A DNA stretch of 63,512 bases, the filler included, from Basidiobolus meristosporus CBS 931.73 (lineage: Eukaryota; Fungi; Basidiobolomycota), in NCBI GenBank assembly GCA_002104905.1. It is 4 parts of 4 records of this genome, joined end to end, with 100 filler letters (N's around TTAATTAATTAA, not from the genome) between each part and the next. Parts side by side here need not be neighbours in the genome. Positions count along the whole stretch, not along the records: positions 1 to 28,321 come from MCFE01000886.1; 3 more parts are not named here. One strand, given 5' to 3'. A program made the translations under genes and the position numbers. Every line of letters starts with the position of its first letter. The stretch's first letter is position 1. Below, one piece after another: positions 7,290 through 28,321 of this stretch. The notes under the pieces are model-generated. The model was not told where the DNA came from. It searched no databases and was given only the letters and a program-made list of their open reading frames with translations.

Positions 7290-9777
7290 CAAAAAAGTTG
7301 CCACTTCTGCCATGAATACCTCCTGAATATCAGCAAAGAAATTCTTGGTATTTAGCCAATATATTCCTTCTCCCTGCTGGATTCTAGTCCCCCTTATAGG
7401 TGTGCTCTGGCTTTTGTTTGTGTGAATTCCATATTGAATGGTGTAGAAGTTAGTTTGTGACCATGAGAAATCTGGCATATCTTGGTGCAGTTTTCCTGAT
7501 CAAAATTAGTTGTTTGTTGCACCCAACCCAATTTTGCAGTACTCAACTGATTACCCATGCATTGGGGCTGCTTAGCTTCTTAATGCCATAGGCATAGGTG
7601 TCTCCATGCACAAATTTGTCCTCAGTATTTTCCAACATTTCCTGGCTGTCCTCCATGCGCCATCTAATCACATGCATCACAGACTTGAAGGTAATATTCT
7701 TGATGAGATTGGGATATGGTTGTACCTGCAACTTGACTTGTCTTCCTATCTCCCCACACATCTGCTCCATAGGAAATTCCTAAAAGGTGAAGCAACACCC
7801 AATATTCTCCACACAACATGCAAGATGGAGTAGAGAATGGATACAGTAGCAGCAGAGATCTATGTGCTCAGCTTTATGCTTGTATTATAGCCACTCAAAT
7901 CCTTTCACAAACTCCTCACACAATAGCTGTAGATGCGTCAAGTTGGCATTGGTGATCCACTTCTAGATAAATATTCCTACAATGTCCACATATGACTCCC
8001 AGTGCTTCCAGTTTACTCTTGGTAGGAATGGCTTCAGAACACCACTTGAATAAATACTTGTCCAGTTCATCCAGTCTTTGCATTTGTATTGTTGCATATG
8101 CATATGAATATTAATTGGAGCCCATCAGAAGTACTAAGGGTAGCAGATACTCTGTAATATCTTGCCAATTCTTTCAAATTTCTCCAGTATCTAATAGGGC
8201 TCATTTAGCCTGAAATGCCCCATGTACAACTTAGTCATCAGTATATGGATATTGTTGAAAAGCAAATGCATTGCTCCCAGTGGAAAGCTTTTGCTCCAAC
8301 AAATACCCTCTATGTTCAGTATCTCTGGTTTCTGATTGATTCCATATTCCGGCCAATGGCTTATAGATTGCCAACTTTGCTGCAATTGCATGCTTACTAC
8401 TGTATGTTCTCTCTGTGGAAAGATGATGTTCTTATTGCTGGTGATTGGGTAATATTAATGTGTGTGAGTTATGGAGTAAGTCCTCTGGATCTCACACATT
8501 TGACAGCAATACCATCCATTGTGCCCAGAAAAACCTGCTATCTTCATGATGGCTGCAGTATCTCCAATGCAGATAATAATATGCACATTTACATGATGGC
8601 CATTTACTGTTATCCCACTGAAAAGCATACAAAACTCATCCAGCATTGGATACAGGTAGCTATCCAGGTTGGACGGTGATTTAGGATAAGATACCAGTGA
8701 GACTACCATCAGATTATTGCTCTGATACTGTAAGATGGGAGGCAGATTCAGATTGATGAGAATCAGTGGTCAGCAGGATTTGCTGATAGAGTACTTGTTT
8801 GATGAGCATCCATCAAGTGCTAAAGCAAAGGCATGGTCATACATACCTTCAAAGTACCCCCTGCTTCTTAGCTGTTTGTAAAGTATACCATCAAATATAT
8901 TGGATATGTTTGGGCTTGATTGATACTGAGTGAGGAACTGCATAGCTTTGCAATATTTGTTGGACTGCATCAGCTTCCTCAGATGGGGTATGACTGAAAT
9001 AAATCTGGAGTGTGAACAATGTTTTCCCTCAATGGTGGTGAATTCCTTACAACTTGGGCACGTTGCAATGGTAGCGTTTCTAGATGTGAATGCCATGCAA
9101 CTGTTAACACATGCTGGAATCAGGAGAGTCTCTGGATCATATGTTGCCAGCCACATGACAGTTGTCCACTTGTACCATGTACATGGTAAGTTGCATCCCA
9201 GTATGATTTTAGCAAGAAGTAATATTAAATCCTCAATGCCCCCATTACTAATATTAGTGGAAACGTGCCACTTCTCTAGCCAAAACATTACATCATTCAC
9301 CAGTAGATGGATTACTGGGCTCACTGGGCCCCATAAGGTATCCTTGGCATTTGTTTTAACAGGTGTTGTCACATTGCATATAGGGATTTGACCAGGCTCA
9401 TATGTGGTACTGTTGTTAGAGGAGATAGGCTCAAAATTCATCAGTGAACCTTCTTTGTTAGTGCTATCACTCTCTGTGCCGTATTCTGAAGGCTGAGGTG
9501 AGCCTAAAGGCATCACAAACTCACCTGACTCAGTTTGCACAAGGTGACAAAGATGGCCAGGTGCCAATATAGAAGTATCAACTTGCCGGCAAGATAATGT
9601 TGGTACAGTGGTGACCAATGAATGGTCAAATATGACTTGGGTGGCAAACCACCGGCCATGATCCTTGTAATACTTTCTATGCTGTCTGTGTGCTTCATGG
9701 ATGAGAGGCTTGCCACAATAGCCACATGGTCTTTTTTCTCTTCTTTTACAACATTGAGTCAAAGTAGTCTTGTCCAT
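7290..9777 (-). pseudogene. En/Spm Tnp2-family transposase, frameshifted
   Basis: Motifs ACVNSCMAF..CPxC, NIFDG..Y..L..RGYF...FALALDG, P.NLDSYLYPMLDE, GD.AAI.KIAGFSGHNG..CC.MC, MHLL.NN, and MEQMCG.IG..VK....PY.NL. Confidence 0.88.
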
Positions 9778-17498: not shown

Positions 17499-18770
17499 TG
17501 TTGTGTTGTATTATGATTAGTTTGGGGCTTGTTCTACAATGTAGAGGCTAATCAACAATATACAACAGCTTCTAGTATGCTAATACTGAAATAGTTTATT
17601 GGGAGTTTGATATACCAATAGAAGATATAACTTTCTCTAATTTCCTTAATCTTAGGCTCAAAATATACTGTAGGCAGTGTTTATCACTTCTACAGCAGTG
17701 TTCTGACCTTCTGTTGACTAATGGGCTTATTTACTTTTATAGCAACTTTTCCTTATTTGGAATTCACTTTCCTTTCTGAGAAAACATTTGCTAATATGGA
17801 AATTCTGACTCCCCTTTAGCCTAAAGGGGTGTGTTGTAGAAGTCTCTAAAGGGGTCTTTAGACCTAAAGGGATGTCTAAAGGGGTGTCTTTAGAGCAAAG
17901 GGGTGTCTAGCAGGGTGTCTTTAGAGTAAAGGGGCTTCTTGTAATGGTCTCTAAAGTGGACTTTACACAAAAGGGGTGTCTAAAGGGGCTTCTTTAGAGC
18001 AAAGGGGTCTCTTAAAGGGGTCTCTAAAGGGGTCTTTAGACTAAAGGGGTGTCTAGAGGGGTGTCTCTAGAGTAAAGGGGTTTCTTAGAGGGGACTTTGC
18101 TGACAGAAAAGTGGTAGTTTCTTGTGGAACTTAGATTGGATTCTTGTGAGCCTTGCAGTTTCTTTACTGATGTAGTACCAATCAAATTCAGAATACTCAA
18201 CAATGCAAGTGATGCAGGGGAAGTCTTATAGCCTTTAAACTTGTAACTGTAGTGTGAAGATTCTGGAAAGAGAGGCTTGCTTTTTATTTTTCAGCTGGGG
18301 AAGTCATATATATGAAAATTTTGAAGGATCAAAGTTTTTGGGCAATTGCGCAAGCAATACATGTGATACAAAGCTAAAACCTTGCAGTTGCACAGATTGG
18401 ACATAGGCGCAGCACCTGTGAGAGTTTCACATGATTTGATTGGCTGGTTTTAAAGTTACATGCAATCAAAGTCACCATAGTAATCCTAGCAATAAGGCAT
18501 AGTATATTTAATAATTGGACTCTTTTGGTCATTACTCCTTAAGTACTGCTTCAAGTGAGCTGTAATCTGAAACATGTGTTGGCTACTACTTGCTCTGTGG
18601 GACATAATATTCTTGGGTGCATTGCTTCTCAGGGTCTGGAGCATTTGCTCTTCAAACTTGGAAATTCTTGATCTTTCACTTGTGTGTTACAATAGCAAAA
18701 AGCAAATAAAGAAATGAGTGCAATATTGGTTTAGAGATATTGTAGTAATGGAACACTTTCCATTACCACA
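17499..18770 (+). mobile_element. Solo LTR family A (1272 bp), 4-bp TSD ATTC
   Basis: TGTTG...CCACA termini with ATTC at 17495-17498 and 18771-18774. Removing it restores the uninterrupted family B sequence seen at ~1001-1020. Sense strand is inferred only from an AATAAA near 18705. Confidence 0.88.
17815..18095 (+). repeat. G-rich imperfect minisatellite inside LTR A (AAAGGGG-TGTCT-TTAGAG modules)
   Basis: More than a dozen AAGGGG tracts with shuffled spacers. The complementary C-rich version is at ~85-290. Confidence 0.85.
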
Positions 18771-22308: not shown

Positions 22309-23569
22309 TGTTATGATTTGCCACTTGAATGATTAAGTTAGATCAGTTTTTAGTCAAATCAATTAGCATATGTTTAAGTTATCAGTATATCAGTAGTATC
22401 TATCAAATCAGTAGCATTATTCAGCAAATGAATCAGCAGATCCTTTTCAGACAGAAATAGATATATTAAGTAGGATCTTATTGGGTGATGATGATGCAAT
22501 CAAATGAGTCATCAGCCACAACCTACATTAGGAAATACAATTAGTCAGCAATTGATCTGGCAAAATGTATATAAGGAGCTGCTGGTACCTCAATAAAGAT
22601 CAGTTCAAGTTTTAGTGAATACAATGCTAGCTAAACTCCCTATTCCTCTACAACTCTTATACCAAGACCTGTAACATTGGTGGCAGCAATAACCAGAGAC
22701 CTCCCTCCTGAAGAAAGAAGAAGCCTCCCTCAAGATGTCCAAAAATCAAGAATGGAAGAATGCTATGCAGCAAATCCTGGCCTAACAGCAACAGTTACTC
22801 CAGATCCTTAGCCAGCAACAACAAGGAATGACTACCAAGGCCCAAAGCCAGCAAAACCCTGTCAAGCGCTACTTTAGTGTGAAAGTCAACCGGTACCATG
22901 GTAGAGTCAATGAAAACCTCTGAGCTTGGCTCTTCCAGATTGAAGAAGCTTTCAAGGCTAAGGAAATTGCTCCAGAAAGCAAGTTACATTTTGCAGCCTC
23001 TTACCTGGCAGATGAAGGTTTACAGTGGTATCACAACAAGATCAGGTTATCCACCATGATGGGACGCTCTACAATCTCTACCTGGGATGAGTTTGTGTTG
23101 GAAATTCAGGATGCCTTTGAACCCCCACACCAACCAACACTACTAAGAAGAAAGTTGAAGACACTCAGACAGAAAGGAATGGTACAAGAGTACATCTACA
23201 AATATAGGTGTCTACTTGGACAAATTGAAAGAATGGCCCCTCTGGGTCAAGTTGAATACCTTATTGATGGGTTAAAAGAAAGAACTTGTAAGGAAGTGAA
23301 TTATTGAAGAACTCAGACTATTGAGGAAGCCATCAGATTACCATTGAATATGACTTAGCTATGTTTGGAGTTGGGAAGCCAACAGTGACTAATCACAGAG
23401 GCTACAATCACTATCAAAGAAAACAATCCAAAGCAGTGCCAATGGAAATAGATGCTATACAGAAGAATCCTACCTCAGAAGAATGTAAGAAGAAAGGACT
23501 TTGCTTGAATTGCCACCAGCAGGGACATAATGCAAAGTACTGCCCTCAGAGAAGAAATGGACATAAACC
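22309..23569 (+). mobile_element. Ty3/Gypsy-G: 5' LTR (22309-22676), PBS (22678-22690) and decayed gag, inserted in Copia-H
   Basis: TGTTA...TAACA LTR. PBS TGGTGGCAGCAAT resembles Leu-type TGGTGGCAGCGGT. The retrotransposon gag (W.FQIEEAF...HFAASYL...LQWY...TWDEF...F) and the knuckle CLNCHQQGHNAKYC are cut by a Copia-E LTR at 23570. Confidence 0.85.
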
Positions 23570-26195
23570 TGTTGAAATATTGGACTATTTGATATCATTC
23601 AGCAGCTAAAAATTTACTTAACAGTTCTAGACTAGTCTTAGTCACTGTACAACTCATTTACTGCCTTAACTTGGCCACTTTCTCCTGATATATGATCTTA
23701 TGATTATTCCCCTATAGTCAGGATCAAATTAGCACTATTACCAAACATTATGTACTAACCCTGAAGCTGTTACAGAATGCTCCTGAATATTGAGAAACCC
23801 TCCCTACTTAGTGTTACAGCTGTATTACTTCTACAAAGGTATAAATACTTAGCTTCTTTATGATTAAACAACATTTTAACTATTATCACTATTTCTTGAT
23901 AAGTTCCTTATATCCAAATCACTTCTTAAATTGCAACAGGTTATGAGCCCCAATTGCCTTAATCTATTCTAAAGATGACTTCTACCTGCAAACAAAGCAA
24001 TACCAACATCTTTCCTGTAAAGGAGAGGTTTGATCGGAAGAACTACAGACTTTGGAGAATCAAGATGCAGATCCACCTTGAGGACAGACAGCTCTGGAAC
24101 ATAGTAACAGGAAAGGAAGTTGAGCCCAAAGGAACAGCAGAAGATGTGGAGAAGTTTTAAGAGAAGGAGAGAAAGGCCTTCAATGCCATATGCATCAATG
24201 TGCAAGACTCCTTCATTGGACAAATCCATGCCTCAAATACTGCCAAAGCAGCATGGGAATCCTTAGAGAAGATCTTTAGAGCAAAGTCAGTATCAAGCAA
24301 GCTTTATTTGAAACAAAAGTTCTTCAATATGAGAAAAAAGCCAGATGATGACATGCTACTACTCATTACCAGAATGGAGACACTTGCAGAAGAACTTTAC
24401 AGTATTAATGCTGGTGTAGATGATGAAGAAAAGATACTCTGTCTGCTTTGCAGCCTCCCAGACAAGTATGAGCCACTCATACTTACTTTTAAAAGCAGAG
24501 AAGACTACTTGACTTTAGACTATGTCAAAGGACAACTTCTCCATGAAGAACTCAGACATAATGATCAAGCAGAGAAAATTGAAGATAATGCTTTATTCAG
24601 TTCAGAAAGGCATACAGAAAAGAAGGGAAAGCAACAAAACCAAAGAAAACCTGGCTGCTGTAACTACTGTAAAAAGCCAGGACACTGGGCAAGAGAATGC
24701 AAGAAGAAACAAGCAGACAAAAAACAGAAACTAGAGCAGGTAAACCATATAACTACTGATGAACAGTTATTTGTAACTGTACAAGAGAGTGCAAGTAACC
24801 AAAGTAATGAATGGTATATTGACTCTGGAGCATCACAGCATATTTGTGGTATAAAGGATTGGTTCAGCAACTTAAAGACTATTCCCGTAAGAAAGGTTTA
24901 TCTGGGAGATAACTCTGCATTGGAAGCTACCGCCAGTGGGTCTATACAAATAAATATGAGTGATAACTCAGGGGCAACAACCGCAAAACTGACTGACGTA
25001 CTCTATGTACCTGGAATAGCTAAGAACCTACTCTCAGTCAGTAAAGCAACTACTCAGGGACTGAAATTTGTTTTTACTAAGCTGACCTGCTCAATATTGA
25101 GTGAACAGAAAATGAGCCAATTGGTGAAAAATCAGCTTGTTTTGGGCCTAAAATACTTGATTCCAATCAAATTGAATGTTTGTAAGGGATGTCCATATGG
25201 CAAACAAGCTAGGCAACATTTCAAGAGCTTAGAAGGCATCAACACCACCAAAATATTGGCTATTGTACACTCAGACATATGTGGCCCCATGAGAAAACTG
25301 TCCTTTGGAGCCAAGAGATATTTTATAACATTTATTGATGACAAGACAAGATATACATGGGTGTACTTCCTCAAAACAAAGGATGAAGCTTTAGAGACAT
25401 TTAAGCACTTCAAGAACATGGCAGAAACACAAACTGGGTGTAATTTGAAGGTACTACAAAGTGACAATGGAGGATAATACTGCTCAAAGGAGTTTGCAAA
25501 ATACTGCTTGTCTACTGGTATACTTCAACAGACCACAGTTCCTCATACTCCACAGCAAAATGAAGTAGCAGAACGCGCAAATAGAACAATAGTAGAGATG
25601 GGAAGATCTATGCTACATGATAAGGGAATGGACTACAAGTTTTGAGCTAAATCTGATGTCACCGCTGTATACATCAAGAACAGATGCCCAAAAACAGCAC
25701 TGTGTGATTCTACACCCTTTGAAGCATATACAGGCAAAAAACCAGATCTCCAGCACCTCAGGATCTTTGGCAGTGATGCTTTTTATCACATCCCTGACAA
25801 AAAACGCTCAAAGTTGGAACCAAAGAGTAGAAAAGGGATCTCTCTTGGGTATTGTGAAGATACTAAAGGGTATAGAGTGTATGATGGCAAAATTCAGAGG
25901 CTGATCAAGAGCAGGGATGTTGTATTTCAGGAGAATTCAGATCAGAAAGCCACAGAAATCATTGGCCAGCTGCCTGATGATGCAATCAACACAAATGAAG
26001 AAGATACATACCAAATCCAGCCAGAGATGAAAGATACTTCTACCAGTGCCAGATCAGAACAGATTATCCCAGTTAGGAGATCTACCAGAATAAGAAATGC
26101 CCCTGGATCCTGGTGGCAGACATTCAATGATCATGAAGAAGCTCATCTTGCCTAATGTGCCAAACCTTGGAATCTGGAATAGGCAATGCAAGGTC
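23570..26195 (+). mobile_element. Ty1/Copia-E copy 1: LTR 23570-23938, PBS 23939-23950, gag-PR-IN, interrupted just before RT
   Basis: 369-bp TGTTG...CAACA LTR. PBS GGTTATGAGCCC (half-tRNA-iMet type as in copia/Ty5). Knuckle CNYCKKPGHWAREC, WYIDSGASQH, IVHSDICGP. Stops at 24158 and 25475, and a 147-bp deletion near 25104. Confidence 0.95.
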
Positions 26196-28321
26196 TGTTG
26201 AAATATTGGACTATTTGGTATCATTCAGCAGCTAAAAATTTACTTAACAATTCTAGGCTAGTCTTAGTCAGTGTAGGACTCATTTACTGCCTTAACTTTG
26301 CCACTTTCTCCAGATATATGATCTTATGATTATTCCCCTATAGTCAGGATCAAATTAGCACTATTACCAAACATTATGTACTGACCCTGAAACTGTTACA
26401 GAATGCTCCTGAATATTGAGAAACCCTCCCTACTTAGTGTTGCAGCTGTATTACTTCTACAAAGGTATAAATACTGAGCTTCTTTATGAATAAACAGCAG
26501 TTCAACTATTATCACTATTTCTTGATAAGTTCTTTACATCCAAATCACTTCTTAAATTGCAACAGGTTATGAGCCCCAATTGCCTTAATCTATTCTAAAG
26601 ATGACTTCTACCAGCAAACAAAGCAATACCAACATCTTCCCTGTAAAGGAGAGGTTTGATGGGAAGAACTACAGACTTTGGAGAATCAAGATGCAGATCC
26701 ACCTTGAGGAAAGAAAGCTTTGGAACATAGTAACAGGAAAGGAAGTTGAGCCCAAAGGAACAGCAGAAGATGTGGAGAAGTTTCAAGAGAAGGAGAGAAA
26801 GGCCTTCAATGCAATATGCATCAATGTGCAAGACTCCTTCATTGGACAAATCCATGCCTCAAATACTGCCAAAGCAGCATGGGAATCCTTAGAGAAGATC
26901 TTTAGAGCAAAGTCAGTATCAAGCAAGCTTTATTTGAAACGAAAGTTCTTCAACATGAGAAAAAAGCCAGATGATGACATGCTACAACTCATTACCAGAA
27001 TGGAGACACTTGCAGAAGAACTTTACAGTATTAATGCTGGTGTAGATGATGAAGAAAAGATACTCTGTCTGCTTTGCAGCCTACCAGACGAGTATGAGCC
27101 ACTCATACTTTCTTTTGAAAGCAGAGAAGACAACTTGACTTTAGACTATGTCAAAGGAAGACTTCTCCATGAAGAACTCAGACGTAATGATCAAGCAGAG
27201 AAAATTGAAGATAATGCTTTATTCAGCTCAGAAAGGCATACAGAAAAGAAGGGAAAGCAACAAAACCGAAGAAAACCTGGCTGCTGTAACTACTGTAAGA
27301 AGCCAGGACACTGGGCAAGAGAATGCAAGAAGAAACAAGCAGACGAAAAACAGAAACTAGAGCAGGCAAACCATATAACTACTGATGAACAGCTATTTGT
27401 CACTGTACAAGAGAGTGCAAGTAACCGAAGTAATGAATGGTATATTGACTCTGGAGCATCACAGCATATTTGTGGTATAAAGGATTGGTTCAGCAACTTA
27501 AAGACTATTCCCGTAAGAAAGGTTTATCTGGGAGATAACTCTGCATTGGAAGCTACCGCCAGTGGGTCTATACAACTAAATATGAGTGATAACTCAGGGG
27601 CAACAACAGCAAAACTGACTGACGTACTCTATGTACCTGGAATAGCTAAGAACCTACTCTCAGTCAGTAAAGCAACTACTCAGGGACTGAAATTTGTTTT
27701 TACTAAGCTGAGCTGCTCAATATTGAGTGAAAATGGACAAAAATTAGCTTTGGGAATCAGAGATCACAATATATACAAGTTACAATGCAAGATCATTGTA
27801 CCTGAGTATGTCAACATTGCTGAAACTGATGAAACCAACTGGGAGACGTGGCATAGGAGGCTAGGACACATAGGGGAACAGAAAATGAGCCAATTGGTGA
27901 AAAATCAGCTTGTTTTGGGCCTAAAATACTCAATTCCGATCAAATTGAATGTTTGTAAGGGATGTTCATATGGCAAACAAGCTAGGCAACGTTTCAAGAG
28001 CTCAGAAGGCATCAATACTCACCTGAAATATTGGCTATTGTACACTCAGACATATGTGGCCCCATGAGAACACTGTCCTTTGGAACCAAGAGATACTTTA
28101 TGACGTTTATTGATGACAAGACAAGATATACATGGGTGTACTTCCTCAAAACAAAGGATGAAGCTTTAGAGACGTTTAAGCACTTCAAGAACATGGCAGA
28201 AACACAAACTGGGTGTAAATTGAAGGTACTACGAAGTGACAATGGAGGAGAATACTGCTCAAAGGAGTTTGCAAAATACTGCTTGTCTACTGGTATACTT
28301 CAACAGACCACAGTTCCTCAT
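26196..28321 (+). mobile_element. Ty1/Copia-E copy 2: LTR 26196-26564, PBS, gag-PR-IN running into the assembly gap
   Basis: LTR is about 95% identical to 23570-23938 (about 18 differences in 369 bp, by eye). ORF 26601-28067 is open for 488 aa and includes WHRRLGH, with a frameshift near 28020. Confidence 0.95.

Follow-up and report, generated by a model that had tools for sequence, protein, structure and literature searches.

The Nested Copia Pair

The window analysed here is the whole stretch of 63,512 nucleotides (filler included) from Basidiobolus meristosporus CBS 931.73, whose content, according to Pfam and other comparisons, is TE-derived sequence only. Within it, two Copia copies of one family are nested on the plus strand. 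Copy 1 (23570..26194) is the older, dead 5' part of an element comprising a 5' LTR (23570..23938; 369 bp, TG...CA, zero CpG), gag, the protease barrel and the start of the integrase, and it ends at 26194/26195, where copy 2 has inserted. The target of copy 1 was another retrotransposon, of which a gag remnant with a Retrotrans_gag domain and a CCHC knuckle is left on the plus strand (23056..23569). Contigs of the family lose their likeness to the window upstream of 23570 and downstream of 23938, i.e., at the bounds of the copy 1 LTR.

Copy 2 (26196..28321, plus strand) is the younger, nested insertion, since its LTR (26196-26564, TG...CA) begins within the coding sequence of copy 1. Its gag-pol ORF (26601-28067), recognizable by Pfam domains, is frameshifted by two extra bases (28020..28021) and stops at 28067, with the integrase resuming in another frame from 28022/28031; no insertion matching these two bases reaches 5% of the family depth on copy 1. 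The domain order in the pair—Retrotran_gag_2 (4e-41), Pol_BBD, gag_pre-integrs, rve and SH3_retrovirus, in one frame—is that of the Ty1/Copia type, with Retrotran_gag_2, Pol_BBD, rve and SH3_retrovirus matched in copy 1. Ahead of the place where RT/RNase H, a 3' LTR and a target-site duplication would be expected, copy 1 is broken off at 26194 and copy 2 leaves the piece at its edge at 28321.

The family is very abundant, with a read depth worth roughly a thousand copies. Searches for further family copies by protein words returned nothing above 41% identity, a protein search with a second ORF gave no matches, and scans of metagenome and viral contigs (protein; exact 32-mer) were empty. In the Atlas, a transposase-like ORF led to fungal clusters labelled Mucoromycota, while the Copia clusters were dominated by plants.

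Decay of the Older Copy

Copy 1 bears the marks of an inactive element. It contains stops, the presence of which had been pointed out in the initial annotation and which lie at 24158 and 25475, and a 147-bp in-frame deletion, whose junction was placed by BLAST/MAFFT at 25102..25105 (plus strand; counterpart in copy 2, 27732-27875); at this point, the family contigs carry on with copy 2 sequence (loose ends at 25103/25105). At 30 non-CpG differences between the copies, at least 98.6% of the family depth reads a letter other than that of copy 1, while copy 2 agrees with the family majority at each of the 30 listed sites within its span and is, thus, near it. The near-private coding changes of copy 1 amount to 18 non-synonymous and 8 synonymous ones, including the two stops, which look neutral, since 67-86% of changes would be non-synonymous under neutrality. 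Given these near-private, neutral-looking changes, the CpG losses described below most likely came about by decay once the copy had inserted and are not the outcome of selection.

Polarity of the CpG Losses

For comparison of the copies, positions 23569-25546 were aligned with 26195-28321 by BLAST and MAFFT. The offset is 2626, changing to 2773 past the deletion in copy 1 and to 2775 past the two extra bases of copy 2, and the pair is 97% identical, with 68 substitutions. Copy 2 has 15 CpGs (26940..28233, plus strand), one of which lies inside the deletion; among the 14 aligned ones, 11 appear as CA in copy 1, TG occurs at none of them, and three are retained. The initial annotation, which had aligned the copies by eye and reported 11 CG>CA against no CG>TG changes at the first two of these offsets, is borne out in all these respects; of its cited examples, GAC GAG to GAC AAG (27089-90 / 24463-64) is correct, while the pair 27099/24473 is off by 10.

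The 11 sites span 24314..25458 on the plus strand (A at 24315, 24464, 24558, 24642, 24719, 24801, 25165, 25218, 25330, 25399 and 25458) and all lie in the gag-pol frame, where they affect six CGN Arg codons, three NCG codons and two codon junctions of the type NNC|GNN. The CpGs retained in both copies (24886..24998, plus strand) are found at 24886 (CCGT), 24931 (CCGC) and 24997 (ACGT). In the other direction, copy 2 shows neither TG nor CA opposite any CpG of copy 1, and the two extra CpGs of copy 1 (24035, 24982) are of transversion origin. CG can be taken as the ancestral state because distant Copia proteins keep arginine, or mostly R or K, at positions occupied by Q or H in copy 1: the R of LRSDNGGEY is kept in 8/8 homologues aligned there, and R or K prevails at the LRRKFF and EERR positions.

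Transitions hit 11/28 C/G positions of CpGs but 22/742 other C/G positions, a raw 13-fold difference; hypermutability of the CpGs in this Copia repeat is, thus, supported. The asymmetry is limited to CpG, since outside CpG the transitions in copy 1 are split evenly between the strands (11 G>A, 11 C>T). Under a context-free binomial, the 11:0 count has a two-sided p of 0.00098 (one-sided 0.0005), so that the previously given value of about 0.001 holds as a naive figure, but not once sequence context is taken into account.

Sequence Context of the Losses

Throughout the window, CpG is strongly depleted (o/e 0.08), with TG and CA at 1.35, and the depletion depends on the preceding base. Counted on both strands, there are 13 TCG (o/e 0.019; 0.009 outside the Copia pair), as compared to 62 ACG (0.10), 43 CCG (0.08) and 56 GCG (0.11), i.e., TCG is depleted about five times more strongly than the other NCG trinucleotides (chi-square p = 1.7e-9); the most enriched product is TTG. 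The 15 CpGs of copy 2 are spread over ten ACG, five CCG and no TCG on the sense strand, and over seven TCG, seven ACG and one GCG on the antisense strand. Accordingly distributed are the losses: seven are at sense CGA (antisense TCG) and four at sense CGT inside ACGT, which corresponds to 7/7 antisense TCG, 4/6 antisense ACG and 0/1 antisense GCG. Within the pair itself, the contrast of 7/7 lost TCG to 4/7 lost VCG goes in the same direction as in the window without being significant (p = 0.19).

As TCG is preferred and the seven TCG are located exclusively on the antisense strand, the 11:0 count probably reflects mainly the location of the targets and not an enzyme confined to one strand. Only the four ACGT sites bear on polarity, because there both strands offer the same context, and they stand at 4:0 (two-sided p = 0.125). 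In a strand-symmetric, context-aware model, the probability of 11:0 given 11 events is 0.004-0.06 for TCG:VCG rate ratios of 2 up to infinity; the ratio is poorly fixed, being about 2 if o/e is read as survival and 5-10 if it is read as equilibrium. Even with context allowed for, the count sits in the tail, which speaks against an explanation by context. Furthermore, ACG was lost at 4/6 antisense but at 0/9 sense sites (Fisher p = 0.011), and a polar model outdoes the symmetric context model by a likelihood factor of about 8 to 30, from which nothing has yet been deducted for the case having been chosen by eye, after the fact, for its extremeness. Other repeat pairs in the window (75-94% identity) have 1-5 CpG differences each, too few for polarity.

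Explanations for the One-Sided Losses

In our view, the losses are probably best accounted for by an old copy that decayed in place under a TCG-preferring, strand-symmetric loss of CpG, with the layout of the targets yielding 11:0. Copy 1 would be an inactive Copia insertion decaying where it had landed, with a younger member of the family arriving inside it later. The extreme instability of CpG in this genome would most likely arise from cytosine methylation followed by deamination, and its peak at TCG would correspond to the TpCpG-preferring hypermutation of Pucciniomycotina TEs. On a sense strand devoid of TCG, with seven TCG opposite (sense CGA, four of these being Arg codons), a strand-symmetric process would result in sense CAA; at the remaining four losses, in ACGT, either strand could be hit, and their all falling on the antisense side would be a modest chance event.

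The initial annotation had instead proposed a strand-biased, processive or single-event mutator, which the layout of the targets does not support. In a truly strand-polarised, RIP-like event, an enzyme would have moved processively along the antisense strand of copy 1, once or a few times, and deaminated (methyl)cytosines in CpG, as in single rounds of RIP in Neurospora. The placing of 11/11 losses on one strand, including 4/4 at the ACGT sites, together with the ACG contrast and the likelihood ratio given above, is what such an event would leave, and workers on RIP score each strand separately (bioRxiv 10.1101/115501). However, 7/11 sites need no polarity, and the post hoc choice of the case weighs on the remainder. 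Nothing points to a burst set off by homology, because copy 2 keeps 15/15 CpGs although it is linked to copy 1 and 97% identical to it, in a family of about thousand-copy depth. The places of variants on copy 1 (C>T 35, G>A 23, A>G 37, T>C 24) also fit TG variants at these CpGs in the family, which is an indirect reading, and the classical RIP indices are negative (TpA/ApT 0.84; (CpA+TpG)/(ApC+GpT) 1.49). On balance, we regard a strand-polarised event as unlikely, and the 11:0 count as weak evidence for a strand-specific mutator; classical RIP is rejected on account of the negative indices and the intact linked copy.

The CA letters might also have been inherited, if copy 1 stemmed from an active sub-lineage that was losing CpGs under purifying selection, with G>A tolerated (R>Q/H or silent) and C>T eliminated (stop, Cys or non-synonymous). 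G>A is indeed milder at 9/11 sites (CGN or NCG codons), C>T turning four CGA codons into TGA, and in this respect the argument against selection offered earlier was thin. The 40 best-supported of 174 variants where the family differs from copy 1 include no member of the 11 sites, so that the A is not evidently private; recurrent mutation at hypermutable sites, however, also accounts for this absence. Against inheritance stand the private, neutral-looking character of the other changes in copy 1, the cost of R>Q in the integrase motif at the arginine kept in all homologues aligned there and of two E>K changes, and the pace of CpG loss, which exceeds that at other C/G at least 13-fold, so that 1.7% private divergence already predicts that most CpGs are lost in place. 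We therefore hold inheritance to be quite improbable and, given the neutral private changes and the R>Q at the conserved position, reject selection as the cause of the losses, in agreement with the earlier conclusion.

Editing of minus-strand cDNA by an AID/APOBEC-like deaminase during reverse transcription would cause sense G>A at insertion, which is the polarity observed on the coding strand. Yet cDNA is unmethylated, and we know of no deaminase with a strict requirement for C before G. Moreover, G>A is not in excess outside CpG, neither overall (11 versus 11 C>T), on which ground APOBEC-type editing is rejected, nor among the private changes of copy 1 (3 versus 7), and the depletion of CpG and TCG across the window points to a genomic process; such editing has, in our estimate, next to no probability. 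Only slightly more credible is chance alone, with CpG deamination symmetric and indifferent to context: the pair was presumably one of many inspected before it was reported, but the binomial probability is about 0.001 and the context effect is visible independently in the window, which makes this model unnecessary.

Relation to Known Systems

Classical RIP of Neurospora crassa likewise changes C:G to T:A in repeats, reportedly with strand polarity in a single round, the feature to which the initial annotation had appealed. It differs from the present case in targeting CpA instead of CpG, the RIP indices being negative here, and in mutating both linked duplicates, whereas copy 2 is untouched and has kept all seven CGA. 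RID, which is needed for classical RIP, was not found in the basidiomycetes of Amselem 2015 (PMC4352252). Hypermutation of the APOBEC3 type shares sense-strand G>A in a retroelement, but CpG context is not an APOBEC signature, and a G>A excess outside CpG is absent here.

Closer likeness is offered by the TpCpG-preferring "RIP-like" hypermutation of Pucciniomycotina TEs (Hood 2005; Horns 2012, PMC3318451; Duhamel 2023, PMC10502011). Both there and here, C>T changes occur at CpG of repeats, including Copia, with an extra preference for TCG (CGA opposite), TTG and CAA are enriched and RIP indices of the CpA type are negative. The target in Microbotryum, however, is described as strictly TCG, whereas VCG is also heavily depleted here (o/e about 0.1), and the Pucciniomycotina TpCpG studies pooled both strands and so did not look at polarity per copy. 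In rusts and other fungi, old TE copies lose CpG while young ones keep it (Amselem 2015, PMC4352252; Austropuccinia psidii, bioRxiv 10.1101/2020.03.18.996108), as in the present pair. This decay has been read as deamination of 5mC with imperfect T:G repair, tied to a methylase of the Masc2/Dnmt1 type and depending on age, without bursts (PMC4352252; bioRxiv 10.1101/2020.03.18.996108). The idea of a RIP-like process specific for CpG instead of CpA, put forward in the initial annotation, has forerunners in the literature, where hypermutation of fungal TEs at TpCpG/CpG is already described (PMC3318451, PMC4352252, PMC10502011).

Implications

TCG-preferring CpG decay is an already known phenomenon, of which the Copia pair is one more instance. 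Strand counts at CpG need to be stratified by trinucleotide context and by the CpGs that the active element still carries. It is doubtful that TCG/CpG hypermutation is delivered in strand-polarised bursts, each on one strand of one copy, as an enzymatic, processive, RIP-like reaction as opposed to the slow, spontaneous decay of methyl-CpG; if it were, the published strand-pooled TpCpG analyses could not have revealed such bursts. A true polarity would mean that the CpG "RIP-like" mutation in RID-less fungi is an active, processive enzyme reaction, and would settle whether TpCpG hypermutation represents genome defence or passive deamination of methylated TEs, a question raised by Horns 2012 (PMC3318451) and Amselem 2015 (PMC4352252).

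Copia Copies and Their Nesting

The two copies compared here, copy 1 (23570–26194, plus strand; older and inactive) and copy 2 (26196–28321, plus strand; ended by the edge of the piece), each represent the 5′ portion of a Ty1/Copia element. Both start with a 369-bp LTR with TG...CA ends (23570–23938 and 26196–26564, both on the plus strand), followed in the 3′ direction by gag, a protease barrel, a pre-integrase domain and integrase. Because its LTR begins in the middle of the coding sequence of copy 1, copy 2 is the later, nested insertion; copy 1, in turn, has inserted into the gag region of a different retrotransposon (Retrotrans_gag and a CCHC knuckle; 23056–23609), which makes the locus a three-level nest. 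Both copies are broken—copy 1 by stops at 24158 and 25475, as the initial annotation had indicated, and by an in-frame 147-bp deletion, copy 2 by a 2-bp insertion at 28020–28021 shifting the gag-pol frame. The latter looks private, since no such insertion is found at 5% or more of the depth of the family. CpG is absent from both LTRs, and copy 2 has its first one 745 bp from the start of the element; CpG seems to have been retained by the active lineage in coding sequence only.

Elsewhere in the window, inverted arms of about 600 bp (1–605 and 17499–18177; 85–94% complementary) lie about 17 kb apart, with sub-terminal 73-bp tandem repeats (17843–18086). Between them, a minus-strand ORF of 335 amino acids (8770–9777) has no Pfam match and is similar to Transposase_21/Plavaka-type fungal clusters in the Atlas. 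Arms, repeats and transposase-like ORF together may represent a large DNA transposon in which retroelements are nested.

CpG Loss in Copy 1

Alignment by self-BLAST and MAFFT defined two direct copies (23569–25546 and 26195–28321) differing by 68 substitutions. Their offset of 2626 changes to 2773 past the 147-bp deletion, both values as originally proposed, and to 2775 past the two extra bases that copy 2 carries relative to copy 1. The fate of the 15 CpGs of copy 2 matches the strand-polarised count initially reported: in copy 1, 11 read CA, none TG, three are kept in both copies and one is deleted (p = 0.00098, naive two-sided binomial, previously put at about 0.001). The cited change of GAC GAG to GAC AAG is correct, while the example pair 27099/24473 is off by ten. 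Within the aligned pair, TG or CA in copy 2 never stands opposite a CpG of copy 1; the two CpGs found only in copy 1 (24035 and 24982) are transversion products (G>C, A>C). The asymmetry is, as an observation, real, and it is carried by CpG alone, since the non-CpG transitions of copy 1 are symmetric (11 G>A versus 11 C>T).

CG is the ancestral and CA the derived state, because distant Copia proteins keep R, or R/K, at positions occupied by Q or H in copy 1: the R at LRSDNGGEY is kept in all eight distant homologues aligned there, and the LRRKFF and EERR positions are mostly R or K. Transitions affect 11 of 28 CpG positions versus 22 of 742 other C/G positions; CpG-specific hypermutation of repeats was, thus, rightly recognised, though it is already known.

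To survey this very abundant family, contigs of a single sample (runs X1 and X2) were mapped onto copy 1, yielding about 14,000 matching contigs with a summed word depth of 3–8 × 10^5 (single divergent contigs, about 10^2) and break points exactly at the LTR ends and the deletion junction of copy 1. At 30 or more non-CpG differences between the copies, at least 98.6% of family depth carries the letter of copy 2, which places copy 2 near the family majority and makes the letters of copy 1 private or nearly so. These near-private changes (14 transitions, 16 transversions) are unusually transversion-rich outside CpG. Among the best 40 of 174 variant rows, which do not include the 11 CpG sites, the private coding changes of copy 1 comprise 18 non-synonymous (including the two stops) and eight synonymous ones, pointing to neutral drift (under neutrality, 67% of transitions and 86% of transversions would be non-synonymous). 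Runs X1 and X2 are extremely rich in the family, X5 and X6 practically devoid of it; the latter two bear the same species label with another organism code and match 23569–26194 only in about 60 short pieces less than 95% alike. Either different species or lineages may share this label, or the family may have expanded recently. Protein searches and scans of metagenome and viral contigs yielded no further source of family copies beyond the run contigs.

Sequence Context and Strand Polarity

On both strands of positions 1–28321, where overall CpG observed/expected (o/e) is 0.08, TCG occurs 13 times (o/e 0.019; 0.009 without the Copia pair), compared with 62 ACG (0.10), 43 CCG (0.08) and 56 GCG (0.11). 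TCG/CGA is, hence, depleted about 5–10 times more strongly than the other NCG contexts (13 versus 43–62; o/e 0.02 versus about 0.1; p = 1.7e-9 against equal depletion), and TTG is the most enriched product trinucleotide. From this unequal depletion and the TTG enrichment, it follows that CpG decay here favours TCG. A clear trinucleotide mutation signature is visible in just 28 kb.

The CpG contexts of copy 2 are themselves unevenly laid out, with ACG ten times, CCG five times and TCG never on the sense strand, and TCG seven times (sense CGA), ACG seven times and GCG once on the antisense strand. Copy 1 has lost antisense TCG at 7/7, antisense ACG at 4/6, antisense GCG at 0/1 and sense contexts at 0/14 sites. 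With all seven TCGs antisense, seven of the 11 polarised changes are the necessary product of a strand-symmetric, TCG-preferring process.

With rho as the ratio of TCG to VCG (ACG, CCG, GCG) rates, the probability that all 11 losses are antisense, (rho/(1+rho))^7 × 0.5^4, is 0.004, 0.017, 0.032 and 0.0625 for rho of 2, 5, 10 and infinity, respectively; the o/e values give rho of about 2 as survival and 5–10 as equilibrium. The four ACGT sites, an equal target on both strands, are split 4:0 (two-sided p = 0.125), and ACG losses differ between antisense (4/6) and sense (0/9) with a Fisher p of 0.011. A strand-biased, processive mutator, as initially proposed, gains a likelihood of about 8–30 times that of the symmetric context model, without discount for a case picked by eye; it is not needed for seven of the 11 sites, given that TCG is antisense only. 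Furthermore, the variant sites of copy 1 (A>G 37, T>C 24, C>T 35, G>A 23) are symmetric outside CpG only if TG-bearing family members exist at these CpGs; on this indirect reading, the sense strand would have been hit in other copies. Since the polarity stems mostly from the layout of targets, such a mutator is not established and we consider it unlikely; the polarity itself is suggestive at best. Other repeats of the window offer too few CpG differences for testing it.

Selection, dismissed at the outset on two sites although codon phases matter here, would produce exactly such polarity if copy 1 had inherited its CA states from a selected lineage: six of the 11 sites are CGN Arg codons (four CGA, where C>T gives TGA, and two CGT, where it gives Cys), three are NCG codons with silent G>A, and only two (NNC|GNN) allow silent C>T. 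Yet the remaining changes of copy 1 are neutral and private, and the integrase motif would not tolerate R>Q; the probability of this origin is low. Classical RIP was rejected on its negative indices (TpA/ApT 0.84; (CpA+TpG)/(ApC+GpT) 1.49) and on the retention of every CpG by copy 2, which is linked to copy 1 as a 97% identical duplicate; cDNA editing was rejected as a G>A excess is absent outside CpG.

In-place decay over the time span of the 1.7% private divergence of copy 1 explains why most of its CpGs are lost. The TCG preference found here equals the TpCpG signature of transposable elements in Pucciniomycotina (PMC3318451; repeated in PMC10502011 and PMC12730594), which others have ascribed to Masc2/Dnmt1-type methylation followed by deamination (PMC4352252; bioRxiv 10.1101/2020.03.18.996108).
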